Assembly (NCBI GenBank): GCA_030704615.1
Contig: CM060733.1
Location: forward strand, 186,001-250,000
Length of the DNA: 64,000 bases
Reading direction: 5' to 3'
DNA from: Takakia lepidozioides
Taxonomy: Eukaryota > Plantae > Bryophyta
Part shown: piece after piece, positions 19,396 to 38,724 of the stretch
How the letters are laid out: each line of letters starts with the position of its first letter
Numbering within the stretch: position 1 is the stretch's first letter
The notes under the pieces: generated by a model
What the model saw: the letters and a program-made list of their open reading frames with translations, nothing else
What the model was told of the DNA's origin: nothing
Databases searched by the model: none
Program-made: the position numbers and the translations under genes

Positions 19396-22356
19396 CTATG
19401 TGCACGCCTCCTTCAGAGCATCTTGGGGAAGAGGAGGAATCATTTGTTGCAGCAATGATACGGGTGCAGCTGGGGGGTTCAACATTGGTCCAAGAACAGG
19501 AGGGGTTGTCGCTAAGGCATGAGGTACATATACTACCATAGGTAATGGAGAACCACCATCAAATTGAGCTGGAACTGCGGGAATGGATATTGGCGGAGCA
19601 ACAAGGGAGGTAGCAACTGGTGGAGTGACATGAAATATAGGATCTGAAACTTGTGAGGGGCCTCCACCTATGGTACTGTGCAACACAACTGTATCAGAAT
19701 CAGACTGGGAGTCGGCCCCGCATCAGTTTCAAATCCCTGTGACCCCAATTCTGAGTCTGATGAGAGGGTTGCCACATGTCCAGTATTTTGGGCACCATCT
19801 CTTTCAACCTTCACATCCACATAAGGAGGAACAACAGTGGATGGGATTGTCAAGTCCACAACATCTTCATGTGTACTTTGTAGCGTATGTGTCGTGACAA
19901 TCTCTGGAACAAATGCAGCCTGCAGTGGAGATCCAGGAATCTTCTTTGGTGGAGAACCAGGAATGAGGAACTTCTTGACATAACCCTTTCCTGAAGCTGA
20001 AACCTCTTGCATGATGGTATCAGGTGTGACATCAACCTCAGGGTTCAACGGATCACCAACAATTGGTGCAACGATCCCCGGCCGCGACAGCCCCACAGGT
20101 GACATTTGAAGAGTTGATGAGCTTGGAGTTCGAGGGAAGTTTTGGTTCACAGCACTACCACCATGTCCACTTTGGCCTCCACTATAGTTGGTGGTGAATG
20201 CGCTATAGTTGATGGTGGCCTCAGATGGAGGTCCTGGTCTTCGTTTGTTGGCATCAATGAAGCCATCATCTGCTATCACACCTACACCATTACAACTGGT
20301 TTGAGAAGGCTGAATTATCACTTGGTGCCTAGTGTCTACCAATACAACATTAACTGTAATTTGAGTCCAGACAAGTCATTGTAGTCCTTACCATTGGCCG
20401 AAGTCCCAACAGTTGGACTACAATAATTATGTGTAGAGTGCACAGTCCATCATAATGGACTTTTTGTCCCCCATATTAGACTTCCAAGTTCTATGCAGCT
20501 GATGATGGGACTACAAGCAAGATTCACACTCCCTAATTAGGACTCACACTCCATCTGGGCCACGACTCAGATTCCAAGTTGAGAAGCAAGCTCCTCAATA
20601 AGGACTCGCATTCCATATCCATTATTTTGCAGTTGGACTCACACTCCACATGATTAAGCACATGATATGACCCTCCACAGGACTCTGATTCCAAACTGGA
20701 AATCAGTGGAAATCATTAAGGACTCATACTCCCAGTAATTAGTCAGCAAGTGGACTCACACTCCCCATGACTAAACACATCGACTCATACTCCACATGAG
20801 TCAGCACTTGGACTCACACTCCACATGACTGAAGACTCAGAATTCTACTTAAGAATGACACTCCTCAATAAGGACTCCCCAGTAAGGATTCACTCCACTA
20901 AAAGGACAAATAATAACATTTGCAGTCCCACATTCAGACTCATAGTGAGTTGAAGGGGTTGAAGATCCAATCTTGGGACTACAGTCCTAAGGATTGGACA
21001 TGAAGAGGTACAGCCTTGGACCACACAAGTTTTCTGAAGAAGAAAACATGGAAATGTTGCAATCAATCTTACCTGGAACTTGGGTGTTTCTAACCCTGGC
21101 TTCGTGAAGTTGTTTTGTCATCCACCTTTGGCGCATTTCAACCACTCTCAGCTTTTCCGCAAGTGCATGCACCTCTGGGTCAAGAATCCTAAACCCAAAA
21201 CTAGAACACCAATCAGGATGCATGATCTCTGAACAGCTGAAGTCCCTACACCTTTGACGTCTTCATATGGGATGCCATACAAGCAGGATGGTAAGTGTGC
21301 TTACAAGATGCCACCACCATGTCCCAACAGTGGAAACCTTTGTGGCAAAACAGGGCAAGGAGAGACCTTCAGGAAATCCTTGATGGACGTACTATCTTTG
21401 ATCACTTGAGGATGACATATAGGCATAGGATAGATGGCGAGTCATTTGTCCCCATTTGTCAAGGCCTCAATCTGATCTTGGATAAGACTCCTCTCTGTGT
21501 CAGCAACATCGACCACATTCTCTGCCACTCTAATGTCCCTATCTTTTTGGTCCCCTGCATCACACAAAGCATTGAACTCTTTTTCGGTCTTATCAGCATT
21601 GAGCCAAAATTCTGCTTCAATTGATTTCTTCTGGTCAAGTTCCCTTTGCATCTCAGACTGTCTTCCCTTTCCACAATTCAGTAACCCAACACTCTCTTCC
21701 CCTTTTTGCATTAAGGTCTCTTCCCCGGCTCGGATTGTGGCACCCTCGTGGGAGAGTTTGGCCTCTAGGTCTGCAATCTTGTTCCGACACTCTGCAAGAC
21801 ACCATTGTCCGTCTTCCATTTGCACCCGAACAGTCCGCGTCTTCTCCATCAAGTCCAACTTCCCTTTCTTTAACCTCTCCAACTCTTCCTTTGCCCCACA
21901 CATCTCCTCATACTTCAAATCATGTAGTTCATGAAGACTCGCTAGGGCAGTTGCCACATACTCTTGCTCATGTTTTTTCCTTTCCATCTCTGCAATCACT
22001 TGCTCAGGCGTTTGTTTCAGTCCTTCTTTGCCTCTACTTGGGGTTTTGCGTAGCCTGTCTTTCACCTCACACACTCCTAGCTTTGGCTTACTGTCTGTGC
22101 TGCCAGGGTCCTTTGCTTCTCGATGCTCCTTCATTCTTTCTTGTTGCTTAGCTGTCCATGCCGCGTATGCTGCCCAATTGAGTTTTTGTCCAGTCCTTTT
22201 TTCATAGACAATGCCCTTTGCCATCAAGTTTGCAATGATACCACCGGTTGGCTTACAATCATACCCATGAACCCCCGGGGGGTGCACTCCAGCCAATATG
22301 TACCAGCCACGTGCGTGCACAGGAGGGGGTATTTTAAACCCCTCCATGTACAACAT
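19396..22356 (-). pseudogene. Decayed TE-associated gene: coiled-coil + RING-H2 finger + low-complexity Pro/Ser tail
   Basis: ORF 21442-22356 (LNWAAYAAW then a long heptad region) continues past a stop and frameshifts into CPVC-HKGFHCWDMVVAS-CKHTYHPAC-...-RCRDFSC-SEIMHPDW (21200-21365). Assigning the downstream ORFs 19396-20342 to the same gene is inferred. Confidence 0.55.
20510..20945. repeat. Degenerate tandem repeats of GGACTCACACTCC
   Basis: More than ten copies of ggactcacactcc / gactcatactcc / gactcagattcc variants. Confidence 0.8.
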
Positions 22357-22949
22357 TATACATATAGAGGGGGGTTTATATCACCTTAAATATAATCTTA
22401 CAGGAGGGGGTTACTAAGTTTTAGGAGTAGTCTAGTGGTAAGGGCGTAGAATGTGGCGTGACACATCGCGGGATCAAATCGCGATGCAATGTTTTTTTGC
22501 TTTTCTTTTTTTTCTTTTCTCCCCGCGATCTGTCTCCCGCGGGCTCTCTTTTCCCTCCTCCCCCGCACCCCTTCCGTGTCAGCATGGTCTTAGCATGCCA
22601 TGAGCTTTGTGACCCCCTCTCTTTCTTGTTTCTTTTTTCCTCTTATCCCATAAGATCTTTGAGCTTCCTGCAGCCATTGTGAAGTACAATCGCATTCTAC
22701 CAAGATTTGGCGTTTGCGGAATAGTGGCACCTTTCCATGGCCTAAGCATACTCAACAAGGCCTGGCTCCGGAGGCTGAGACAGAAGCTTCAGTTCATCTT
22801 GTGGCTCCTGAGAAACCTGGTCGCTATCTCTCATTGGCGTCTGGTAGCACCTGCTGGTCCTAAGTTTGGTCATCGGGTTTGGGTTTTGATTCAGGTATGT
22901 CCAAACTGATTGCTTTTCTTTCGTTCTGTTCCTCTGCGCCTCTCCACCT

Positions 22950-25900
22950 ATCCTCAGCCTCAAGACTTTCAAAGTTGGTAAACAAGGGTATAGGCACAAT
23001 TCCCTTGATAGAATTGAAGAGAGCGTCTCTTTGGTGAGAGAACCCCGGACAGTGTATCAGAAAACGAATATTGTCTTTAGGTTCCCCACACAACGGACAA
23101 TTGCACTCTCCCTTTCCTCTCTGCTTCTGTTTGATGTTCAAAGGTAGGCTTCCTGCCCTGAGTTTAAATTTCAGTCTGGTGCCGAGGGTGGGTAGACCCT
23201 TGAGGTCATCCAAGATGTCCACCCCCATGTCACTAACTGGAACAAGTTCAGGGAAGTTCTCTACCTAACTTCATTTTCATCAGACAATCTCATGGCAACA
23301 GACATGGCTTCAGACACTACAACCTCTAAGTCAGATTTATCCAGCAGGGTCAAGACTTGAGGATCCAGGTCAAGGTCCTTGAGAATCTTTTCTACTCTCT
23401 TCTGCCAGGACTTTGCATGTTTGACAGGGTTTAGGGTTTCCAAGATATAGAGTCGATTAACTTAGGATATCTGGTGTTGGGCATATGTTGCAGCTGACCC
23501 CACCATCTGACCTTGATTTCATCTCGTCGGGAGCTTAAGGATGGAGTGCCAAACTCACCCCGAACAGCCACATTGGCTGTTTTGGAGCATGCTGACATAC
23601 ACTCCTTAAGCGCCTCCACTTGAATGGATTCTAGAGACTTAGCCTGCCTGGAGTTATCAACCCATATAGCAGATCCGTACTCCAAGGCAGGTCTACTAAC
23701 GCGAGAAAGCATGGTTTTCTTAACCTCAGAGTTGACCTCTGTGCAGTGGAAAAATTTAGTGAGCCCCAGAGCTTTGCCCACTGAGCTTTGCCCCAGAGCT
23801 TTGCCCATTCGGTGAGAGAACCCCGGACAGTGTATCAGAAAATGAATATTGTCTTCAGATTGCCCACACAATGGGAAGTGCACTCCCCCTTTCTTCTCTG
23901 CTTCTGTTTGTTGTTCAAAGGTAGGCTTCTTGCCCTGAGTTTAAATTTCAGTCTAGTGTCGAGAGTGGGTGGACCCTTGAGGTCATCCAAGATGTCCACC
24001 CCCATGTCACTAACTGGAACAAGTTCAGGGAAGTTCTCTACCTAACTTCATTTTCATCAGACAATCTCATGGCAACAGACATGGCTTCAGACACTACAGC
24101 TTCTAAGTCAAATTTATCCAGCAGGGTCAAGACTTGCGGATCCAGGTCAAGGTCCTTGAGAATCTTTTCTACTCTCTTCTGCCAGGACTTCGCCTGTTTG
24201 ACAGGGTTTAGGGTTTCCAAGATATAGAGTCGATTAACTTAGGATATCTGGTGTTGGGCATATGTTGCAGCTGACCCCACCATCTGACCTTGATTTCATC
24301 TCGTCGGGAGCTTAATGATGGAATGCCAAACTCACCCCGAACAGCCACATTGGCTGTTTTGGAGCATGCTGACATACACTCCTTAGGCGCCCCCACTTGA
24401 ATGGATTCTAGAGACTTAGCCTGCCTGGAGTTATCAACCCATATAGCAGATCCGTACTCCAAGGCAGGTCTACTAACGCGAGAAAGCATGGTTTTCTTAA
24501 CCTCAGAGTTGACCCCTGTGCAGTGGAAAAATTTAGTGAGCCCCAGAGCTTTGCCCATTTGGTGAGAGAACCCCAGACAGTGTATCAGAAAATGAATATT
24601 GTCTTCAGATTGCCCACACAATGGGCAGTGCACTCCCCCTTTCCTCTCTGCTTCTGTTTGTTGTTCAAAGGTAGGCTTCCTGCCCTGAGTTTAAATTTCA
24701 GTCTAGTGCCGAGAGTGGGTGGACCCTTGAGGTCATCCAAGATGTCCACCCCCATGTCACTAACTGGAACAAGTTCAGGGAAGTTCTCTACCTAACTTTA
24801 TTTTCATCAGACAATCTCATGGCAACAGACATGGCTTCAGACACTACAGCCTCTAAGTCAAATTTATCCAGCAGGGTCAAGACTTGCGGATCCAGGTCAA
24901 GGTCCTTGAGAATCTTTTCTACTCTCTTCTGCCAGGACTTCGCCTGTTTGACAGGGTTTAGGGTTTCCAAGATATAGAGTCGATTAACTTAGGATATCTG
25001 GTGTTGGGCATATGTTGCAGCTGACCCCACCATCTGACCTTGATTTCATCTTGTCGGGAGCTTAATGATGGAATGCCAAACTCACCCCGAACAGCCACAT
25101 TGGCTGTTTTGGAGCATGCTGACATACACTCCTTAGGCGCCCCCACTTGAATGGATTCTAGAGACTTAGCCTGCCTGGAGTTATCAACCCATATAGCAGA
25201 TCCGTACTCCAAGGCAGGTCTACTAACGCGAGAAAGCATGGTTTTCTTAACCTCAGAGTTGACCCCTGTGCAGTGGAAAAATTTAGTGAGCCCCAGAGCT
25301 TTGCCCATTTGGTGAGAGAACCCCAGACAGTGTATCAGAAAATGAATATTGTCTTCAGATTGCCCACACAATGGGCAGTGCACTCCCCCTTTCCTCTCTG
25401 CTTCTGTTTGTTGTTCAAAGGTAGGCTTCCTGCCCTGAGTTTAAATTTCAGTCTAGTGCCGAGAGTGGGTGGACCCTTGAGGTCATCCAAGATGTCCACC
25501 CCCATGTCACTAACTGGAACAAGTTCAGGGAAGTTCTCTACCTAACTTTTTTTTTCATCAGACAATCTCATGGCAACATACATGGCTTCAGACACTACAG
25601 CCTCTAAGTCAAATTTATCCAGCAGGGTCAAGACTTGCGGATCCAGGTCAAGGTCCTTGAGAATCTTTTCTACTCTCTTCTGCCAGGACTTCGCCTGTTT
25701 GACAGGGTTTAGGGTTTCCAAGATATAGAGTCGATTAACTTAGGATATCTGGTGTTGGGCATATGTTGCAGCTGACCCCACCATCTGACCTTGATTTCAT
25801 CTCGTCGGGAGCTTAAGGATGGAATGCCAAACTCACCCTGAACAGCCACATTGGCTGTTTTGGAGCATGCTGACATACACTCCTTAAGCGCCCCCACTTG

Positions 25901-27555
25901 AATGGATTCTAGAGACTTAGCCTGGTTGGAGTTATCAACCCATATAGCAGATCCGTACTCCAAGGCAGGTCTACTAACGCGAGAAAGCATGGTTTTTGTT
26001 AACCTCAGAGTTGACCCCTGTGCAGTGGAAAAATTTAGTGAGCCCCAGAGCTTTGCCCACTGAGCTTTGCCCCAGAGCTTTGCCCATTTGATGAGAGAAC
26101 CCCGGACAGTGTATCAGAAAATGAATATTGTCTTCACATTGCCCACACAATGGGAAGTGCACTCCCCCTTTCCTCTCTGCTTCTGTTTGTTGTTCAAAGG
26201 TAGGCTTCCTGCCCTGAGTTTAAATTTCAGTCTAGTGCCGAGAGTGGGTGGACCCTTGAGGTCATCCAAGATGTCCACCCCCATGTCACTAACTGGAACA
26301 AGTTCAGGGAAGTTCTCTACCTAACTTCATTTTCATCAGACAATCTCATGGCAACAGACATGGCTTCAGACACTACAGCCTCTAAGTCAGATTTATCTAG
26401 CAGGGTCAAGACTTGCGGATCCAGGTCAAGGTCCTTGAGAATCTATTCTACTCTCTTCTGCCAGGACTTCGCCTGTTTGACAGGGTTTAGGGTTTCCAAG
26501 ATATAGAGTCGATTAACTTAGGATATCTGGTGTTGGGCATATGTTGCAGCTGACCCCACCATCTGACCTTGATTTCATCTCGTCGGGAGCTTAATGATGG
26601 AATGCCAAACTCACCCCGAACAGCCCATTGGCTGTTTTGGAGCATGCTGACATACACTCCTTAAGCGCCCCCACTTGAATGGATTCTAGAGACTTAGCCT
26701 GGTTGGAGTTATCAACCCATATAGCAGATCCGTACTCCAAGGCAGGTCTAATAACGCGAGAAAGCATGGTTTTCTTAACCTCAGAGTTGACCCCTGTGCA
26801 GTGGAAAAATTTAGTGAGCCCCAGAGCTTTGCCCATTTGGTGAGAGAACCCCAGACAGTGTATCAGAAAATGAATATTGTCTTCAGATTGCCCACACAAT
26901 GGGAAGTGCACTCCCCCTTTCCTCTCTGCTTCTGTTTGTTGTTCAAAGGTAGGCTTCCTTCCCTCAGTTTAAATTTTAGTCTAGTGCCGAGAGTGGGTGG
27001 ACCCTTGAGGTCATCCAAGATGTCCTCCCCCATGTCACTGACTAGAAACAAGTTCAGGGAAGTTTTCTGCCTAACTTCATTTTCATCAGACAATCTCATG
27101 GCAACAGACATGGCTTTGGACACTACAGCCTCTAAGTCGGATTTATCCAGCAGGGTCAAGACTTGCGGATCCAGGTCGAGGTCCTTGAGAATCACTTCTA
27201 CTCTGGTGTTGGGAAAACACCTTTTGATCTCAGTCCAAACCAGGAAGTGGTCAGAGGTACCAATATCAGTTCTGTCGATCATCGAAGAGAAACACTCGGG
27301 GAACAAATTTTTGTCCATTATGATATAGTCCACAATGGAACGTTCCCCAGTTTGGGATTTCTCACGAGTCCACTGCACTTGGTCACCTCTTGTCTTGTTA
27401 TTCAAGGTCAAAAGCTGAAGCTCTTCCAGACTGTTAATTAACCGTCTGCCATTAGAATTCAGCTCGTCCTCACCAGAAGACCCAATGATATCGTCCTGAT
27501 GGAGCCCTTTGCCCACTTGCGCATTGAAGTCACCTTGCAATAGCACCACAAACAT
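22950..27555 (-). mobile_element. Deleted LINE (RTE-X-like): APE endonuclease fused to the 3' region, followed by a tandem array of 3' modules
   Basis: Endonuclease motifs GDFNA, N.NG..L, SIVDYII, SDH in ORF 26863-27555 join directly to RVEVILKDLD; no RT catalytic core is visible. Repeated RPALEYGSAIW, AVRGEFG and CCHC motifs follow. Confidence 0.85.
23030..27200 (-). repeat. Tandem array, ~5.5 units of ~750/~779 bp derived from a LINE 3' end
   Basis: Unit junctions (FSH|QMGKALG) near 23808, 24558, 25308, 26088 and 26836. ORFs recur at exact 750-bp offsets (24208/24958). Long units carry an extra GAGCTTTGCCC duplication. Confidence 0.95.
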
Positions 27556-28369
27556 GAAGAGAAGCTTTGGAATCTGACACTTTTCTCCCCCCAGTCAATG
27601 GTGGGACAATGTGGGTGGATGGTCAACTGGAAACTGCAGCGGCAACAGCGCAATTGATAGAGCAAGGCATTGCTGATGAAGGTACCTTCTTCAACACATT
27701 TCAGCCCAAGGTCCTTCTGGTTTGACGTGTTTCAGCCGGTTTTTCCTCTCATCCTCCTCAGCCCTGAAGCATATGTATTGAATTCTGTAAGTTAGCTCGT
27801 TGGGTGGATTTGCGGTGCGTTGGAGTGACTTTGCAAGTTTAGGGCCGAGGTGGCAGCATGACAGGGAGGGGTAGCTGTTGATGCAGGGAGAGGATCGTGG
27901 GTGCAAAATCATCCAAGAGGGCCAGATTTGGAGCAAGGAACAGCGCTGGCAGGAGTTCTATAAATATGATCCACAACGGTGGGACAATATTGTCAACAAG
28001 GTGAGCTTTCTTCATGCAACATCGTAGGGAGTTTGACAGAACTTTGTATTTAAATATGTTAGTGTGGAGGGAGGGGTAGCCGCTGATGCAAGGATGGACT
28101 GTGGGTTCAGGATCACCCAAGAGGGCTACCAGCAGTGGAAGTAGCAGCATTTGGTCAATAGCAGTAGCAAGAATTAGCAACGTCAAACTCATCAATCAGG
28201 TACTTGCTTCTGTATACATTTCATCCTCTTATCAACGTAGTCCCTGCTTGGACAGCCTATAGGGTTGTATAAAACAAAACTTTGGAACCTTCCAACCCAG
28301 GTGCTTTGTTATTGGTCTATCAAGGTCTGATTTGAAATGTTTTCATTGCATTTTGCAGGTGAACTCATC

Positions 28370-31300
28370 ATGGAAGAAGAGTTGGACGTAAAAGTCCTGC
28401 TCGTTGGAGGAGATGCATCACCAAACAGGCTTGGTTCTGTGTTCACTATGCGAGGTGTCACATACAAATGCATCCGAGCAGAAATTATAGGTGATGAGCT
28501 TGTCTCAGCAAAATTTCATTTCATTTCCATGGGGGGTAGTGTCCTTTCAGCCAAGCAAGAAGAGAGGATGGTTCTGAAAGGGGATACTGTACACATTAAG
28601 ATTTCAGACCAAAACGATGGGGACCAAGGATTGAAAAGACCTCTATCTTCCAGTGGTTCTACGATCTTGCATGAGGACAGACCAGGCGAGGACCCGGCAC
28701 CAGTGTCTACCAAGATGAGGATGGACCCTGATACACCCTTTGCTGGCGATGGTAGAAATGAAGACCATGCACATGAGCATGCACTTCAGCAGAGATCTGG
28801 TAGATTGTGCAGCACGTTGGCTACATCCAACGATATTCAAAAATGGCAGAAAGATATTAGAGCCGTTGAAAGGAAAATCTCTGCAGAAGGACGATGTGAC
28901 AAGTTTGAGCTAATGACAAAGGATCAACAAGGACAAGCAATGTTCCACATATGGTGTGTTGAGTGTGAGGATGTTTATGCACGGTCTGGGAAAAACAAAC
29001 CATATGATGCATGTGCAAACTTTATGAGATCTCATTTGAGGAGTGAGAGGCATCGCATAGCCTATGAGAGGCGTCATGGGAAGGGTTCATCACAATGTGT
29101 CATCAGCCCTGTAAATGCAGATGAAGCATTAGACGCAAAGAAGAACAGGGTGAAGGAGGCATTAGAGGAAGTCGCTCGGTTTTGTGAGGACAATCCTGGA
29201 AACAGATTTGAGATTGTGGAAGCCACAATTGGAGACTATTCGCAGTTGGGTTCCATAAGGATTAGGTGCCCACTTGATTCGAAGTGGCTACTCTTGTTTC
29301 CAAGGACAGGTTCGTTGCAATCTTCTTTGACAGAGCATGTGAAAGGAAAAACTCATGTCGATGCAGAGATTTGCCAGAAGGTTGAAAGTAGTGAAGGACC
29401 TTACAAAAAGAGAGAAAGGCCTCCAAAGCCTATGATTGCCAAAGATGTAAAGCAATGGGATCTAAGCTCTTTCTTGGTCAGTCAACCTGTGTTGCCGTCC
29501 CCACCACTTGACAATCCAATTGTGGCATCAACAATGGGAGGATCCTCGTCACAAACTCCATACGCTTGTGTTGACGCTGCCCAACGGGGAGATCTGATCG
29601 AGGATTGACAATTACAGCAAAGGTCCCAATGCAACAAAGGAAGACACAGTTTGTGTTGGGGCCTATGGGATGAATGGTGGAAGTACAACCATTCCTTCAA
29701 GATAGCAAGGGAGGAAAGAAGTGGTATGTCGAGCCGTTGACAAATGCAACCATCACTCTAAACAATCAAGAGCATAAGGTTGTTGGTACGTTTCGGCACG
29801 CGGATTGTTTTAGAGTGTCATTGGATGGGGAGCCATTTCCAAACTTGAGATGTTCAGCATGTTCTTCCATTCCCTTGGAAAATGACTTCAGAATGAGGGT
29901 ATATAGAGAAAGAGGTGTCATGGAATGTAGAGGGGAGAGAGATACTGGCAAGGGAAGAAGGTTGTCATATCTTGGAAATCCGGAGATTGTCAAACAAGTT
30001 TACAAAAACAGACAGGAGTTGAGGCAGTTGAGGTTCAAATTGTGGGAGGCCAGGACCAAAGTGGCATCCTTGTCTGTGCGATGTAGGAGTTTGAAGGAGT
30101 CTGGGATTGAGGCAATTGAAAGAGGAGATGTTCTCAAATTTTGTCGTGATATTGTTGATGCACATAGGAGGGGGGATTTTGAAGGAAAAGAAAGTTTGTG
30201 GGATTTTCTTGTTGATATGGGCAAGAATATTGACAGGTCTCCACAAGGGAAGAGGTATGGTACTAGCACAAAAACAATGTTTGAGACTGTGCAACTTTGG
30301 GGGGGTCCGAGATTGCATCATTTTTTGGCTTCAAATGTGGGGGGTCCTTCTATTGATACTACAAGACGGTCTTTGAGGAAAGGTTTGAAGTATAGAGCGG
30401 GAGAAACGGATGATATATTTCAGCATGTGGCTGGAATTTACAGAGATGTGATGGAAGATGCAAATATTCCATTGGGAAGCATCCCAGTGATGGTGGCCGA
30501 AGATGAAACTGTTGTGAAGCAATTGGTACGTTGGATTGCTAGGGATGACACCCTTCTCGGGTTTTGTGGGCTTCAAGACAACCATGTATGTATTTCAAAT
30601 TTTGTGGTGCAAGTGGGAGAAGGGGAATCAGGGTACAAACATATTGTGGAGGCATTCAAAAACAATGTGGTTGCCCATTATGCTAGAGTGTTGATAGCAA
30701 ATCCTCTACATGTACGGTTACCTCGATTGGTATTGGTAATCCAGCTCACTTGCAATAGATTTGACAACAATTTTGTGAGATCACAATGGGAAGTGGTGAG
30801 ACAGTTGTGGGACAAATATGTGAGGGACGTGGTTGGGCCTATAATTGGGCATGCTTCAGACGGAGATAGTAGGAGGAGAAAAGTGATGTTAGAAGATTAT
30901 GCCAATGGGGCTGGAAGTAGATTTTGCATCCCTTGGGAAGGATGGTTGTTTACAGGTCGAGTGTGCAACGGGGGAGATATATACGGACTCCATGATCAGG
31001 ACTTCATCCACAATGGGAAAAAATTGGTAAATCCCTTGGACAGTGCATCACGGACTTTGGTGTTGGGTGATGAGGTTGCTACATTGAATCATGTGTTATT
31101 GGTCTACCATTCATTTTCAGTGGACAAGCATGGACTTCAGGAATGTGATATCAAAAGAGAAGATCGACAGAATTGGGCAGCAGCTGAACAACTGGCATCT
31201 CGGAAGGTGCAAGCTTGTTTGAGGGAGTTACAATCAACTGTGAATCATCGAAGAGAGAGGACCAAAGGTACTGAAATTTACCTATACATCATTTCATGCT

Positions 31301-32762
31301 ACATCGACATTTTTTTGTCTCCTCACATGTCATTGTGTGAGAGGGTACAATCTGCTGCGAATGTATCATTTTTTTTTTCAGATTGTGGAAGTTGTGGCTA
31401 TTCCACCACGAGGTGTATAATCTGAAATCCTTCTTCATTAGCAGGGAAGCATACTTGGATTTACAAATTTCATGCCACTACGTGGTTCTACTTATCAAAT
31501 TGTTCAAGGATAAGTTTAATCATGTGTAAGTTCTTTTGAGCCTTGTTGGTTCAGATGTGTGTGAAATATTCTTCAGCAAAGTGGGAGGTATTTTACGGAA
31601 TGAGAGGACATATGACGGGTGTGATTTGATTGAGAGTGCGGGAGCATTAACACGCATATCCGAGTTCGAGGCGAATCCAAAAGGACCCAAGTTCTCAAGA
31701 GCTCACAAGAAACAAAAACACATATGGTCTTCTTTGGAGAAGAAGCCAGGTATCCCCCTTGCTGATTTGTCCGACTTTTCTACTGTCCAGTCGGATGATT
31801 GCATTGTGGAGGCTTTGAAAACTGGATTTCTAGAAGCGCAACTTTTATGCCATAAACTTGGGATGAAACCAAACAAAGCAACAAACTTGGATTGGTGGAA
31901 TGAGCCATGGACAATTGAGAGACAAATGGAGGCGGAGCAATTCAAAAGCATGGAAGAGGAGGGTGATGATGTCGATGCCATAGATTCTATTTGTCCTCTT
32001 AATGCAGACACACATATTCAAAATGAGGTCGTGGAAGATGAATTGGTGTGCGGGCCTTCGAATTCAATGGAGGATGTTTTGAGCCAACCTTTGGATGATC
32101 ATGCGGAAGAGGTACTTGTTCAAAGTGAATTGAGACATACTCTGGATGCTGTCATTGATGAGTTTGAACAAGAGAAAGATGGATCGAAGGCAGTGGTTCC
32201 ATTTGTCAAAGTAGACGGGAAGACCATATTCAAAAGCACTTTGGTTAGCCAACTCAATGGCAACCCTACTCTATCCAAGGATAGATTGACACGAGTAAGA
32301 AGTGCATCGATGTTGTTTTGCCGAGAAAACAAACCAACTACCAACAACAAAGCCACGAGCTTGGGATTGGGTTCGGATTGTGCTGTATTTTTTGTTGATG
32401 GGGAGACTGCGATCCAAATTACAAACAGGAAAGGAAGACCAGGGAAAACCTGCAGAGGAGCAACCAAAGGCACTTGGTATTTGGGCAGGGTTCAAAGAAT
32501 GCGGAAGAAAATCAATAAGCGGTTTGTAGAATGTAGGGATTTTGTTGATTTATTGGAGCGTCCTTCTCATATGGAGATTGGGTTAGCATGGTACCAAAAA
32601 ATTCGAGGAGGGGTTTATACGTACGATTTGACGGATAATATGATGGTTGATTTGGATTCCATTATCGCGTTAGCATGTTTAAAGTACAATCTCAAGTCAA
32701 ACACATATGTTCTTGATGCAAATGACCGAAAAGTCTTTGACAACTTTATCAAAGGCAAATAA
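28370..32762 (+). mobile_element. P-element/THAP9-like DDE transposase gene, disrupted (stop 29606, frameshifts ~29670 and at the poly-T ~31370, stop ~31527)
   Basis: Ordered motifs VAEDETVVK, HASDGDSRRR, DQDFIHNGKKLVNPL (DxxHxxKxxN), DRQNWAAAEQLAS and VGSDVCEIFFSKVGG match the P-superfamily catalytic layout. N-terminal C2H2-like motifs (CVEC...HLRSERH); intron upstream of the ATG at ~28200-28358. Confidence 0.7.
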
Positions 32763-32874
32763 TTTTTTTAATTAATATGTTAGATTTTATTATGTTTTAA
32801 ATGAATAAATTCGATATAATATAAAAACATACATATACATATTGGAGGGTTATTTTTAATGATGAAAAATGAGA

Positions 32875-33017
32875 ATATACATACAGAAGGGGGTACTTTC
32901 CAAAAATTATAAATTTTTGTATATTTACAGGAGGGGATTTTATAATCTTCAAAAAGTATGTACAGAGGGGGTATAAATTATCCAAGGACCCGTATACAGG
33001 GGTTTTTTTATTAGGCG
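32875..33017 (+). mobile_element. Probable right end of the P-like element: subterminal ACAG(G)AGGGG repeats ending in TTTTTTATTAGGCG
   Basis: Three to four motif copies, then an abrupt switch to unrelated coding sequence at 33018. The reverse complement CGCCTAATAA occurs at 18439. Confidence 0.5.
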
Positions 33018-33018
33018 A

Positions 33019-33400
33019 CGAACGCACGTGATACGCACAGTTTATAAAGAGTGCACCCCCCGGGCAGCTGCAGCCCTTGTCAGTCCACATGTTCAGGCAA
33101 CAGGGAAGCATAAACGAGAACAAAAGAGATCTCGCAAGGCATTGAGTGCAGAGTATGCAAAGAAGCCCACCACTAGGGCGGATTCCAAGGTATCAATTGA
33201 CAAGGATATGGACAAGTGCCCAGGTGAAAGTACCCCCTCATCAAAGAGAGTTGTCGTGCACAAGCCCTTGGATACGAGTGAAGACAACGATCTGAGCCAC
33301 CATGATAAGAGTAACTCAATCCCAGGGGACGGTGTTGTGAAGGCCGCTCGGGGCCCTGTTGTGAAGTCACTGAACACCGTGAAGACTCCTCCCAACTTGA
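33019..33400 (+). pseudogene. 5' piece of unidentified gene A, ending in PVVKSLNTVKTPPNL
   Basis: Open frame ...DGVVKAARG-PVVKSLNTVKTPPNL; its apparent continuation (KMDADSSGAGPKKKKRK) lies on the opposite strand at 35975. Confidence 0.55.
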
Positions 33401-33946
33401 CTGCATTGTTTGGATCTTGATTGGGACAAGTGCATCAGTATTGCTCATGCACAAAAATGGAAGTTGCAAACCCTGCAACCTACAAATACAACTGCTGTCC
33501 GGAGGCAGATTGAAGAAGAAGGGGATGAAGAACAGGAGTTTGGGGGAGATGGGGAGGACTTGGCCTCCTGCTTGGATGCAGGGGACAATTTTGCCTGCAA
33601 TGCTGAAGCTGGAAACTCATAAGGGGTGGACTTCTACTTGCTCTGTTGTGAAAGGCCGGTTCACGTTGTTATGGAGACATTCACAGATGGGTGGGGAAGT
33701 ACTTTTGACCCTGGCGAGCATGTGGTTGCAGGGAGATATTACCAGTTGTGTGGAAGAAGAGATAAGGCTTACAAGTTCCTATCTGACCAGCCTTTGGCAT
33801 TTCTGTATTCGCATTTGGTGAGGGCTATCAAATTTGCTATGCCTCCAGCGACATATCGAGTCAAAGGCAAGGATGCAGTCTTCACCTTGTTTGCGGATGC
33901 ATTGGAAGGCATCAATGAAGCTCTGGCAGCAATGGAAGATCGCTAA
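33401..33946 (+). mobile_element. C-terminal piece of the Sola2-like transposase, inverted relative to its N-terminal part
   Basis: LHCLDLDWDKC...GDNFACNAE..*GVDFYLLCC...VVAGRYYQ...YSHLVRAIKF. It completes the CxCxxC-type motif begun by RDLACF at 36023 on the minus strand. Confidence 0.65.
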
Positions 33947-35079
33947 GATGGCATGTTGCAGGCCAATCCATGGTTGACGGGCAACTTCCCTTATCGGGAT
34001 GGGGTCCAATTCTCCCTTGGGTTATGTAACTCAAATATGTAGCAATGTGAATTACAAGTTGCTTGTGAGCTGAGAGATTGTTTTCGGAATTTGTATGTAT
34101 GTAGCTTTGTTATTTGGCCGCAGATTATAATTCATAATCTATAATCTATCTTGCAAGCTATGGCTGAAGAGGCTATGGCTGTGGCCAAATATGTTACAGT
34201 TCAATTGAATGTGCCTGGTGACTAGAATTCCCGCACTAGTGCTGTGGTGTATCACTTCACAAGGCGGGGAATTTCAATTTAATGTGTCTGGTTTTCTTTC
34301 TGTGATTGGTTTCTTGTTATTTGGAGTGTGTCTGCCTTCCACTCTGATCACACAATCTGTTGTCCTCCCCCTTCTCATACCAACTGGTTGGCAAAGGTGC
34401 CTGGCTATGAAGATATGGCAAAACCTCATCATAAACCCTACAACTTGTCATACTTCCTTGTCCTTTCAAAGTTCCACACCCTCGTTTTGGATAAGAAAGT
34501 GGAGAAGATCATAGCTGTAAAAATAAGGCACATGTTCCTCAAGGCACATGATCCTCAACACGCTGAAGCCGGGCGCCATTCTAGTCTGAGTTACTAACAG
34601 CCTTCCAAACACAGTGGGACAATCAAGTGGAACAGCAGCAGACCTGCTATCATACTGTCTTGATTCCCTCTTCAAAGTTAAGCCATCCTTGCATATTGAA
34701 CTGCATGCATTAAATCATACACACAAGTAATTTTTGGGCTTGGATGAAGTTGAGAGATACTATCAAACTCTCTGAAGACTTAGGCAGGCACAACTACAAA
34801 TCACATTTCTGTGCTCAATTGAGCGAAGGTAGATTGCTTAGAGCTGCTCATTACTGAGGTATATTCTGTTTAGTGAGTTGATTAGTGTCCTGACTTGGGG
34901 TACAGAACCAGCTTGTCTCTTGTAGAGAGGGGAATGATGGGAATGATGTCTGTTGGCCAGGCTTCGGTCCGCCATACCAGGGATCTTCACCAAGGAGCTA
35001 GACTAATTACTTGTATTGTTGGTGTCCGATTGCAGTTTTGTAAATGAACTATCAGAGTCAAGAAAAGGAGGATAGAGGT

Positions 35080-35975
35080 ACGCAACCGGATGTAGCCATA
35101 CCATCCACCAGTTAGTCAAATTTCAGGCGCAGACTCTGTTAAACCCACGCATGTTGGAGAATTGTAGCACAGGCAGGAAAAGCAACGGGCCTTTCAAAGC
35201 CATCTTTCTCACATAGAATGAATGACAGTAGACTGCCTGCCTGCAGGAAGGTATTCTAGCAATTCCTATCAGAAACAGATAGCAAAATAGAGTGCATTGT
35301 TTTCAAAAACCACTGTCATGATATTGCTGCCTTACTCAAACATGTACAGCATACCTATCAGCAGAAAATGAACAAAGAACAGTAATGTGCATGCCCTCAA
35401 TCCATGTCATGTGTCCATTGTGAGCTACTCGAGAAACCACAAGGGCAAATCCACATCACATGACTTGGCTGGGCACCTAATGATAACAACTAACACATCC
35501 TCTGCCAGTTTGAAACTGCTCAACATTGACATATTGTGGCACCAACCTCTACCCCATCGATGAAAGACTAGCCTTTGCTTGGTGCCTGCCTCCCAAAGTG
35601 GCCATGTCATAAATGAACAAGTACTGATGAAGAGACGAGACCTGTCCCCACAATGACAGCAGCGAGTGGTAAAGTCCTCATAGGGGCGGTCTGCTAATCA
35701 CATGCCCTGCATTGCCACCCACAATGCTCAAGATCTTACTATACTTCTGTCTTATAATTCAGCACTAGACGTATACCAGATGTATGTCCTATATATCATG
35801 CATAGAGGAGTTAAATTGCATCAGAAACTTGAGCATGAATTGGCAAAATAACAACCAAGAGTTATTCTAACATTAGTGATAAAAGCATAAGTGTACAGTA
35901 CTCAGCTTGTACCTAGTTGATATGTTTTCTTTTCTTCTTCTTAGGGCCTGCACCAGAAGAATCTGCATCCATCTT
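35080..35975 (-). pseudogene. 3' exons of unidentified gene A (decayed)
   Basis: Exons ~35975-35913, 35706-35573, 35477-35425, 35230-35081 give KMDADSSGAGPKKKKRKHIN* / GM*LADRPYEDFTTRCCHCGDRSRLFISTCSFMTWPLWEAGTKQ / RCPAKSCDVDLPLWFLE* / AGSLLSFILCEKDGFERPVAFPAC, with AG acceptors. Confidence 0.5.
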
Positions 35976-36020
35976 CAAGTTAGGTGGGGTCTTGACAGTA
36001 TTAAGGGACTTGACAACAGG

Positions 36021-38427
36021 CCAAAAACATGCTAAGTCTCGAACCATAAGTTTGGTTGGGTCTGACTTGTTCCTCCCAAGAATGGAATGTAAAGACCGAG
36101 TTCCAGGTACGGTCTTGCAATCCCACTCTTGAGTACGGTCAACATCTTTTGTACCAACAAGCCAAAAATGTCTTTTCACTGCTGTTCTAATCTTAGAGTA
36201 CGAAGAAGGAGGTCGGGTGGATAGGTTCTTGCGCAAAAAAACTACTGCCTCAGCAGCATTTTGCAGCTTCACACCATTTGAGTTTAACAGCTCTGCTCGT
36301 AAAGCCTTCTTGATCACAGCACCAGCCCCATCATGCTCACCTTTCCCGTGCCCTGATCCAAAAAAATTCCACCACATTGTGCAACCCCTTGTGATGTGGG
36401 GGTACCTACTAACAAAATATCAAGGACGAGCACCTTTAAACTGAGCAGCACAACCGTCACGCCATACCCAATGCGATTCAGATCTGAACCTTGCTTCAGC
36501 AAGGTAATTCCAATGAAACCGAAAGCAATGTTGTACGAACAGCGTGTCATGCTTGTTGTCATCAGAAATGTAAAAGTGTACATGATGATGGAGAGTGGAC
36601 ACCCCTCTCGGCAGTCCGCATGGTGTTGAACCCATCCTTCAACTCCGCCATTTCCACATGATATTTGCAGCAACAAACATTACGATCCTTCAGGCGTTTG
36701 ACAAAGAATGGCCTCAACAACTCAAACAATCGTTGACCCACTTTGACATTGGGATGGGCTGATTTGAAACGAAGAAAGAAAGCAGTTTGCATTGCCACCA
36801 CAACATGCACAAAGAGAATCCCATTTAGTGCATGCACTAAGAATACCTACTACTAGTCCTAGACCAGTCCTAGACCTAGTCTTAGTCATAGTCATTTCTC
36901 ATCATATGTCAAATTGTACAAGTACTAATCAGTCCTAGTAGTCCTAGACCCAGTCCTTCCTAGTCACAGTAAATGTATTAATTAGACCGAGTGTGAGTCC
37001 TTTCTAGTCACATATCAAGGAATGCATGTACTAACCAGTCCTAGTCCTAGTCACATACCAATGAATGCATGTCCTAATCAGTCCTAGTCCTACTTCTTTC
37101 TAGTCACATATCAAGGAATGCATGTCCAAATCGGTCCTAGTCCTAGACATTGTCCTTTTCTAGTCACATTTCAAGGAGTGCATGTACTAATGGAGTACAT
37201 GTACATCGACTTGTAGTCCCTCCAAATCAAATTACATGGAGTGCATGCTATTTTGTCCTATCTAGTCATAATATAAGGAGTGCATGCTAGTGAGTCGTAC
37301 TTCTAGTCCATCCCAGGCCTGTTTACAATGAGTACCAGTCCATGAACAAGAGGGACATCTTCAAGACACTCCAATTCAGGACATGAGTTGGATATAGTGT
37401 CCACAATTGAGTACAGTAATCTCAGTGCACTGGTAGGTTTACAGGTGACGATGTACCTTGTCTAGGGAAAATGTACGAGGCAACCCAAACAACACAATGG
37501 CAGTTGACAAACTCCAACATAGTCCAATACAGTTATGTACAGTAGTAAGTGTAGAAGGATTGTAAAGTACTGAGAGCCCACACAAACACTGTAAAGAGAG
37601 GGTTCGCTTACCTGAGTCTCAAGAAGATAGTGAACAGGTTGTGTATCATAGACTTTCCTCGATACGCGCTGCCTCACGACATCTTTCTTGTTGGGTGACA
37701 CTCGTGTCTCATTTACCCACCAAGCCAAAACGATCGTTCGGGTCGCATCTGGTACATGATCAGACCTTTTCTTTCTCCCACCCAAAGCCCACAAACCCTC
37801 ACCTTCTGACTCAATGACTCTTTGTCGTACAATTGCACGACTAATATTGCTATGATGAATATTAAGGATACGAGCCGTTGCCCTCACAGCAGTGGTATGG
37901 GTTCCACTAACAGACGCTGTTAAGAATGAGCATTTACTCGCAAGCTTATCTAAAGACTGCACACCCTTAACAAGTTGCATGGAGCTCTGCTGGTTCTTCA
38001 ACAGATTTGCATGCGCCTTGGCCTCCTTAGGCGGCAAGTAATAGGCAGGTAAGCTGAGTTTAATGAGATGGTGACCCAAAAATAACTCCATTACCTCTGT
38101 TTGTGAATGAAGTGTTGGGCATTCTCTCAATTGCTTGTAACAGAAGTCGGCCATTTTCAAAGCTATTCTCCTCTTGTCTCGTTCTCCAAACCCCACCCTG
38201 GCATCTTCCACAGAACCTTGCCCAGACGTTGTAGTAGCCGCATTAATCTCTGCCTCTTTTTGGGCTTGAAGTCTCTCCCTATACATTCTTTTCTGGTCAG
38301 CGTGGGTTTGTTTGCGTGTATCCTCGGTGGGCCTGGCTGCAGCCAACAAAGCCAGTTTTGCCCTTTTTTGGGGGCCTGGTCTTACCTCTCCATTTACCCT
38401 ATACTTGTTCTTCTTGTTCCCCATTGA
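36021..38427 (-). mobile_element. Sola2-like DDD transposase, N-terminal and catalytic part (decayed; intron ~37611-36787)
   Basis: Motifs RKKRSD, LRPFFVK, DRNVCCCKYH, HFYISDDNKHD, WVWRDGCAAQFK, WNFFGSGHGKGEHDGAGAVIK, VPGTRSLH. The DGCAAQFK + HGKGxxDG pair is characteristic of Sola2-type transposases. Confidence 0.72.
36845..37330. repeat. Degenerate minisatellite (TAGTCCTAG / CTAGTCACAT..AAGGAATGCATGT) inside the transposase intron
   Basis: Multiple ~45-60-bp imperfect units. Confidence 0.75.
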
Positions 38428-38724
38428 AAACTGATACAACTGTTAGCACAGTATAGAGATCGGAAACCAGACAACAGTTTGCTTAAGTGTACTCTCTCTC
38501 CCAATGGTTGTCCCAGTCCAATTCAGTTGTATGAAAACATGGCCTGCAAAACAACCCAAAGCAAATGTGAGAAGAATATCAACACTCTCGGTTTTGTTGC
38601 ACCAATTTACACCAAGTAGGAAAATCTGCAATGAATATGACAACAAATGGGAGAGCCCCCACCTTTACTTGTTATGTAATCAGCCACAAACCCAATGCTT
38701 CCACGATTTACTTCACCATTCCTA

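Follow-up and report, generated by a model that had tools for sequence, protein, structure and literature searches.

Synonymously diverged 46-bp inverted repeats in Takakia lepidozioides as probable tandem units of one gene, separated by a 2.6-kb inversion

Introduction

The window analysed here is a stretch of 64,000 nucleotides of Takakia lepidozioides (GCA_030704615.1, contig CM060733.1, positions 186,001 to 250,000 of the forward strand), in which two 46-bp sequences face each other across roughly 2.6 kb and encode one peptide in different codons. As pointed out in the original prediction, a simple staggered-break inversion would leave two identical copies that decay at random. The question raised by this locus was how inverted copies at the two ends of a segment came to differ at synonymous positions only, and whether a plant shufflon or another special mechanism is needed for it. 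Our reading, to which we give a probability of about 0.88, is that the 46-bp repeats are the tandem units of a single gene (gene A), split and turned face to face by an ordinary 2.6-kb two-break inversion, and that the arrangement has no function.

Results

The inverted repeat pair

By script comparison, plus-strand positions 33355-33400 and the reverse complement of positions 35975-36020 were identical at 37 of 46 bases, and the peptide encoded by both copies (33355-33400, plus strand; 36020-35975, minus strand) was PVVKSLNTVKTPPNL. All nine differences were located at third codon positions, all nine were synonymous and five were transversions, which reproduces the repeat pair as originally described. 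The longest perfect run common to both copies was 8 nt, for which reason the pair was missed by the repeat finder, and no similarity was detected across the 60 nt flanking the copies on either side. In a neutral simulation with nine random substitutions on the 45 coding bases, the peptide stayed intact in about 5 × 10^-6 of the trials; the synonymous-only differences are thus not a product of chance, and call for selection on the peptide or another non-neutral origin, the former being one of the options in the original prediction.

An intact copy of gene A

One phmmer match to the minus-strand ORF 36377-35916, the protein P0051, covered its last 36 residues only (89% identity). The C-terminus of P0051 reads ...AARG-PVVKSLNTVKTPPNL-TTRG-PVVKSLNTVKTPPNL-KMDAGSSGAGPKKKKRKHIN, and its DNA source is contig L001 of SRR15431198, an Illumina shotgun metagenome of Takakia lepidozioides prepared from washed plants collected on Haida Gwaii (PMC9021317). 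In L001, gene A is unbroken (...AARG-P1-TTRG-P2-KMDA...KKKKRK, then the stop), with both codon versions adjacent and in direct order. P1 (L001 1195-1239) is base-identical to window positions 33355-33399 on the plus strand, and P2 (L001 1252-1296) to the reverse complement of window positions 35976-36020; the linker between them is 12 nt long (acc act cgg ggg), and P2 is followed by aag atg. The original suggestion to look for an intact gene A and for the source of each codon version was thereby answered with both versions in one gene. The same contig disposes of several explanations offered at the time: an element carrying a recoded replacement of its target site and an engineered sequence, since both codon versions already stand in tandem in L001, and repair templated from a paralogue, since P1 and P2 lie within one intact gene.

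L001 and the window are 98-99% identical overall (1-1.5% apart), and L001 may be a paralogue instead of the orthologous locus. Using blastn, L001 1-908 was aligned to window 20373-19467 (minus strand, 98.6% identity), L001 903-1239 to window 33065-33401 (plus strand, 97.9%) and L001 1248-2257 to window 36022-35009 (minus strand, 98.9%). Solely L001 1240-1247 (8 nt) is absent between the second and third of these pieces, and two bases of the linker survive at each junction, the first two (ac...) at the plus and the last two (...gg) at the minus one. An origin of L001 by k-mer misjoining of the two units was ruled out, no common run exceeding 8 nt.

The pieces of the locus were assigned as follows.

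33402-36022: inverted segment of 2,621 bp, with an uncertainty of 1-2 nt at its boundaries (blastn with L001, three-way alignment, tblastn of homologues); contains the transposase-like 3' part, a spacer of about 1.06 kb, the gene A 3' flank and the last 36 codons of gene A
19467-20373, minus strand: gene A piece 1, the 5' part, found 12.7 kb upstream of piece 2 in inverted orientation; a 1-nt deletion at the base corresponding to L001 position 655 shifts its reading frame
33065-33401, plus strand: gene A piece 2 (middle), 337 bp, terminating in repeat unit 1
33343-33399, plus strand: repeat unit 1 (AARG + P1), 19 codons, with P1 at 33355-33399
35009-36022, minus strand: gene A piece 3, matched by blastn to L001 1248-2257
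36022-36021, minus strand: linker remnant of piece 3, 2 nt
36020-35976, minus strand: repeat unit P2 of piece 3, followed by the C-terminus KMDADSSGAGPKKKKRKHIN
35915-35913, minus strand: stop codon of piece 3, followed by about 900 bp of 3' flank
36023-38439, minus strand: transposase-like 5' part (T5), a pseudogene, ending ...RDLACF-W at the junction
36866-37290: intron-like stretch of T5 with 43-106-nt tandem repeats
33402-33946, plus strand: transposase-like 3' part (T3), (L)HCLDLDWDKC ... GDNFA ... DFYLLCC (BLASTP, tblastn)
33944-33946, plus strand: natural stop codon of T3
33947-35008: spacer between the gene A and transposase-like genes, which would have been convergent before the inversion
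~34337-34550, plus strand: decayed phosphatidylinositol-transfer-protein-like exon fragment (borderline Pfam PF02121, 21.8 bits against a cutoff of 21.3)

No recombinase was found in the spacer 33947-35008 (ORF list, Pfam), and Rfam gave zero matches over 19-39 kb. The only in-frame fusion in the rearranged order is that of T5, P2 and the gene A tail on the minus strand; the gene A reading on the plus strand meets a stop 6 codons past P1, and T3 lies in the +1 frame.

The transposase-like gene

In a phmmer search against 1.84 billion representatives, 535 relatives of the minus-strand ORF 36377-35916 were obtained, nearly all of which cease to align at query residue ~119 (...RDLACF-W), just before P2. 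Longer relatives (P0005, P0016, P0050, P0081) proceed with CFCxxCxxxxWxxC ... GDNFA ... DFY..C, and the plus-strand reading directly after P1 (LHCLDLDWDKC ... GDNFACNA ... DFYLLCC) corresponds to this continuation with equal Cys/Trp spacing. By BLASTP, residues 1-119 of P0005 were matched by the minus-strand ORF and residues 122-195 and 199-295 by the plus-strand pieces. By tblastn, P0016 was placed with residues 60-246 on 36581-36024 (minus strand) and residues 250-429 on 33407-33940 (plus strand), and residues 341-454 of P0081 also matched T3. In an alignment of 11 sequences, the junction W occupies the third Cys position of the CFCxxC motif that is present in every homologue. Judging from these alignments, T5 and T3 are halves of one gene, abutting to the codon. 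The reciprocal exchange of flanks that had been read from the letters is thus confirmed on both sides, by L001 for gene A and by P0005 and P0016 for the transposase-like halves.

Relative to its homologues, T5 carries a TGA at 36422-36420 in place of W, T3 an in-frame TAA at 33620-33622 in place of D/E, and about 200 codons including the DFxENY motif have been lost between 36667 and 36569; because of these three lesions, the transposase-like gene is dead. No close (>55%) intact copy was recovered, none of the matches in the homologue searches exceeding ~53% identity.

The family had no Pfam match, and the Atlas lead was DUF7869 (0.85-0.86); members were found in Klebsormidium, Riccia and molluscs. 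Invariant D residues were seen in DFxEN, SDDxxHD and sDG/HGKGxxDG of the 11-sequence alignment. For the AlphaFold model (pLDDT 80), all PDB matches by Foldseek were RNase-H-like (NurA, PIWI, retroviral integrase, IstA transposase, RNase H) and weak, with TM 0.2-0.26 and a best E-value of 6.5e-4. Searching for terminal repeats and target duplications identified none. On these signs, the label 'transposase-like', with a putative RNase-H fold and no assignment to a named superfamily, appears reasonable.

Proposed history of the inversion

Both reciprocal junctions are present in the window, and each broken partner is contiguous elsewhere, gene A in L001 and the transposase-like halves in P0005, P0016 and P0081. 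The inverted segment of about 2.6 kb with reciprocal junctions, as first proposed, could accordingly be mapped to 33402-36022 against L001 and the homologues. The neighbourhood before the inversion is a reconstruction, because L001 ends short of the transposase-like gene.

At the start, gene A (plus strand) and the transposase-like gene (minus strand) would have been convergent and about 2 kb apart, the transposase-like copy either being degenerate already or becoming so afterwards. One double-strand break would have fallen into the 12-nt linker between P1 and P2, and a second into TGY, the third Cys codon of the CFCxxC motif in the transposase-like gene. Positions 33402-36022 (2,621 bp) would then have been religated in reverse and repaired by end joining, at a cost of 8 nt in gene A and some 1-2 nt in the transposase-like gene and with 0-2 nt of microhomology, the assignment at the junctions being ambiguous by 1-2 nt. 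Unit 1 would thereby have remained on the plus strand and unit 2 have been moved to the minus strand, without any duplication. On comparative grounds, the intact order is probably the ancestral one, end joining the probable route of repair, and the inversion probably a feature of the plant as well as of its assembly.

It had been anticipated that flipping the segment would rebuild gene A and put the transposase halves in order, still split by the 46 bp. Flipping 33402-36022 would instead rejoin the transposase-like halves directly, the 46-bp insert being absent. Gene A is dead in the window, owing to the frameshift and to its displaced, inverted 5' part.

A second break beside the inversion

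The displaced 5' part would be explained most simply if 19467-33064 had also been inverted, in a second event next to the first and with the 337-bp middle piece of gene A as its pivot. The same 8 nt, CAGCTGCA, are found at both gene A junctions of this break (19467 and 33065), which suggests a staggered cut that was filled in. The other breakpoint lies within AT-rich sequence that contains TACAG(A/G)GG motifs, a short way downstream of the gene at 28337-32762, and one further motif of this type is located just past the far junction. The 28337-32762 gene is P-element/THAP9-like by Atlas feature matches alone (0.95-0.97 to clusters with PF21787), and neither a Pfam match nor a PDB sequence match was obtained for it. 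A search for terminal inverted repeats of a P-like element across the putative second inversion gave nothing above 11-mers.

Divergence of the repeat units in gene A

Proline, serine, threonine and valine abound in the product of gene A, an orphan ORF whose C-terminus bears a basic KKKKRK tail. The C-terminal region contains an in-frame tandem repeat of two 19-codon units, each composed of AA or TT followed by RGPVVKSLNTVKTPPNL. Twelve differences separate the units, two at first positions of the two leading codons and ten synonymous ones within the 17-residue core, and the four-fold sites, 9 of 12 of which differ, are saturated. Of mixed type and spread over the whole unit, the differences comprise 6 transitions and 6 transversions, by which a RIP-like or other mutational bias behind their period of three was ruled out.

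Between the window and L001, zero differences were found in P1, the linker and P2; the divergence of P1 from P2 is therefore older than the inversion and older than the split between window and L001. From the codon pattern, we infer that the synonymous-only divergence is the footprint of past purifying selection on the gene A peptide, following an old in-frame duplication; alternatively, one repeat unit may have been imported from a diverged copy by unequal exchange.

Gene A as a whole differed between window and L001 by 13 nonsynonymous and 7 synonymous changes, and the longer reading frame of gene A in L001 has a TAG; by these signs, the gene looks weakly constrained at present. Since it also lacks other homologues, the selection that shaped the repeat is read from the repeat itself. 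A protein homologue search with the middle part of gene A and with P0051 returned only P0051, and neither a metagenome scan for gene A nor a search of its C-terminal 66 aa against the PDB gave a match; within the window, no further copies of the repeat peptide, of gene A or of the transposase-like gene were found (tblastn, self-blastn). An old gene confined to Takakia would fit the orphan status, given that the genus lacks sequenced close relatives.

Alternative explanations

The account of the 'recoded repeats' as tandem units of gene A stands whether the inversion is real or an artefact of assembly. An artefact, in which the 2.6-kb segment, possibly together with its 13.6-kb neighbour, is mis-oriented and the plant has the order of L001, is in our view improbable. 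It would agree with the normal order of L001, the sole independent sequence, and with exact look-ups, by which the two chimeric junction ORFs were without record in any public assembly (nor was there one for the P-like transposase ORF, the 21.4-22.4 kb ORF or the T3 ORF). Taken by themselves, these look-ups neither back nor contradict the junctions independently. Against it, both reciprocal junctions are resolved to the base, with losses of 8 nt and 1-2 nt that resemble repair and not a flipped graph path; no Ns are present at the junctions; and the breakpoints before the inversion offer no inverted repeat to mislead an assembler, P1 and P2 being direct, 46 bp in length and 80% identical.

Very improbable, and far behind an artefact, is a staggered-break inversion by which a single-copy 46-bp sequence P was duplicated, with subsequent conversion by a paralogue or with both fusion genes under selection. 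A staggered break at P would be expected to give the topology A-P-T3 ... B'-P'-T5', but L001 is already tandem, with the same codon versions and with a linker of which a part survives at each junction, and both fusion genes are dead, so that no selection on the peptide would have operated after the event.

Least probable of all, to the point of being negligible, is the shufflon-like programmed switch of the original prediction, recombining at P and P' to exchange C-termini: inverted repeats at the segment ends and one in-frame fusion (T5-P2-gene A tail) would suit it, but copies that are 80% identical overall, with no perfect run above 8 nt, provide no identical crossover core, no recombinase was found in or beside the segment (Pfam, all ORFs of at least 50 aa, 28-38.4 kb), recombination between P and P' would leave a 46-nt frameshifting insert in the transposase-like gene and gene A minus one unit, and both genes are independently disabled pseudogenes, with the 5' part of gene A inverted and 12.7 kb away.

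Discussion

Given the intact copy, the paradox of synonymous-only inverted repeats vanishes, and no new mechanism, plant shufflon or engineering is needed. A caution follows for the reading of similar loci: a break between diverged tandem coding units can pass for recoded terminal repeats. Of minor interest is the former role of gene A's 17-residue motif, whose conservation is perfect.

Under a wider reading, which we regard as speculative and rather doubtful, the Takakia genome would carry far more clean, small two-break inversions (0.4-36 kb) than is usual, and this locus would be one example, with two of them adjacent (8 nt lost in one, 8 nt duplicated in the other). Such inversions would arise from a lineage-specific, inversion-prone repair of clustered double-strand breaks such as might be caused by UV or other radiation at high altitude; separately, the 19-codon repeat would represent a short linear motif under strong selection in a nuclear protein that is old and restricted to Takakia. 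Abundant small inversions in the Takakia assembly, if real, would be a notable trait of the evolution of this genome. No publication on inversions in the Takakia nuclear genome was found in a literature search covering work other than the Takakia genome paper.

Comparison with known systems

The Hin/Gin, Rci shufflon and fim systems resemble the present structure in having inverted repeats around an invertible segment that alters the C-terminus of a protein. Here, in contrast, there is no recombinase and no conserved crossover core, the genes are dead and the context is a eukaryotic nucleus; the structure in the window does not belong to the site-specific invertible switches, nor is it functionally analogous to them.

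Inversions by staggered breaks, with an inverted duplication at each breakpoint, have been described for Drosophila, and inverted copies of one short sequence at both ends of the segment are likewise found here. In the Drosophila model, however, the ancestor has a single copy and the duplicates are identical at the start, whereas in gene A a tandem pair existed beforehand and had already diverged. The model may suit the neighbouring gene A break (19467 / 33065), with its 8 nt on both sides.

Tandem units of the polyubiquitin type encode the same peptide with synonymous differences, since selection acts on the protein. Neighbouring repeat units of gene A likewise encode one peptide and differ synonymously; unlike polyubiquitin, they are two short units of 19 codons in an orphan, seemingly lineage-specific ORF that now looks weakly constrained.

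The closest counterparts are the simple two-break micro-inversions by end joining that have been catalogued in plants, Drosophila, primates and irradiated plant mutants. Shared with these are the two breakpoints with reciprocal junctions, the loss of a few bases, the microhomology of 0-2 nt, the want of repeats or transposon ends at the breakpoints, and the inactivation of both broken genes. The sole peculiarity at this locus is that one break fell between tandem coding units, by which terminal inverted repeats are mimicked; the rearrangement itself is of an already known kind, an ordinary gene-breaking micro-inversion.

Second break and reading frame of gene A

The 5′ 908 bp of gene A, the orphan ORF, lie inverted at 19467-20373 (minus strand), 12.7 kb upstream of the middle part of the gene, whose junction falls within 33040-33070 (plus strand), marking a second break in this gene. 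Another inversion, next to the first and spanning 19467-33064, could account for the displaced 5′ part. The 8 nt sequence CAGCTGCA is common to both gene A junctions of this break. A CCCGGG palindrome was also observed at one of these two junctions.

Contig L001, which carries gene A from Canadian Takakia, reads TAG at positions 452-454 within the longer upstream frame of the gene; the equivalent codon in the window is CAG. This could mean that decay of gene A is under way in both accessions, or that the gene truly starts downstream of this codon.

Neighboring repeats and coding regions

The repeats and further coding regions annotated in the window were as follows.

2188-2870, near the window start: partial copy, 85% identical, in opposite orientation to the array at 23030-27204
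21445-22356, minus strand: coiled-coil ORF of 304 aa
23030-27204: tandem array of ~5.4 units of ~750-780 bp, units 93-97% alike
28337-32762, plus strand: a run of three long ORFs of 423, 583 and 408 aa, with short gaps between them
32763-33060, downstream of these ORFs: AT-rich TACAG(A/G)GG repeats, subterminal-like
about 34337-34550, plus strand: decayed exon-like fragment within the inverted spacer, borderline match to PF02121
36866-37290: short tandem repeats with units of 43-106 nt, occupying the intron-like gap in the transposase-like gene

The exon-like fragment matched PF02121 (phosphatidylinositol transfer protein) at 21.8 bits, with a cutoff of 21.3. For the coiled-coil ORF, a weak likeness was detected between its N-terminus and that of the Riccia protein P0081 (E 7e-4, 44 aa), the C-terminus of which is a member of the transposase-like family; the ORF and the transposase-like gene may travel together within one element.

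The three consecutive ORFs look like one large gene, possibly intact. Sequence searches of the middle ORF against Pfam and PDB returned no match, and its Atlas neighbors were P-element/THAP9-like transposases, at 0.95-0.97.
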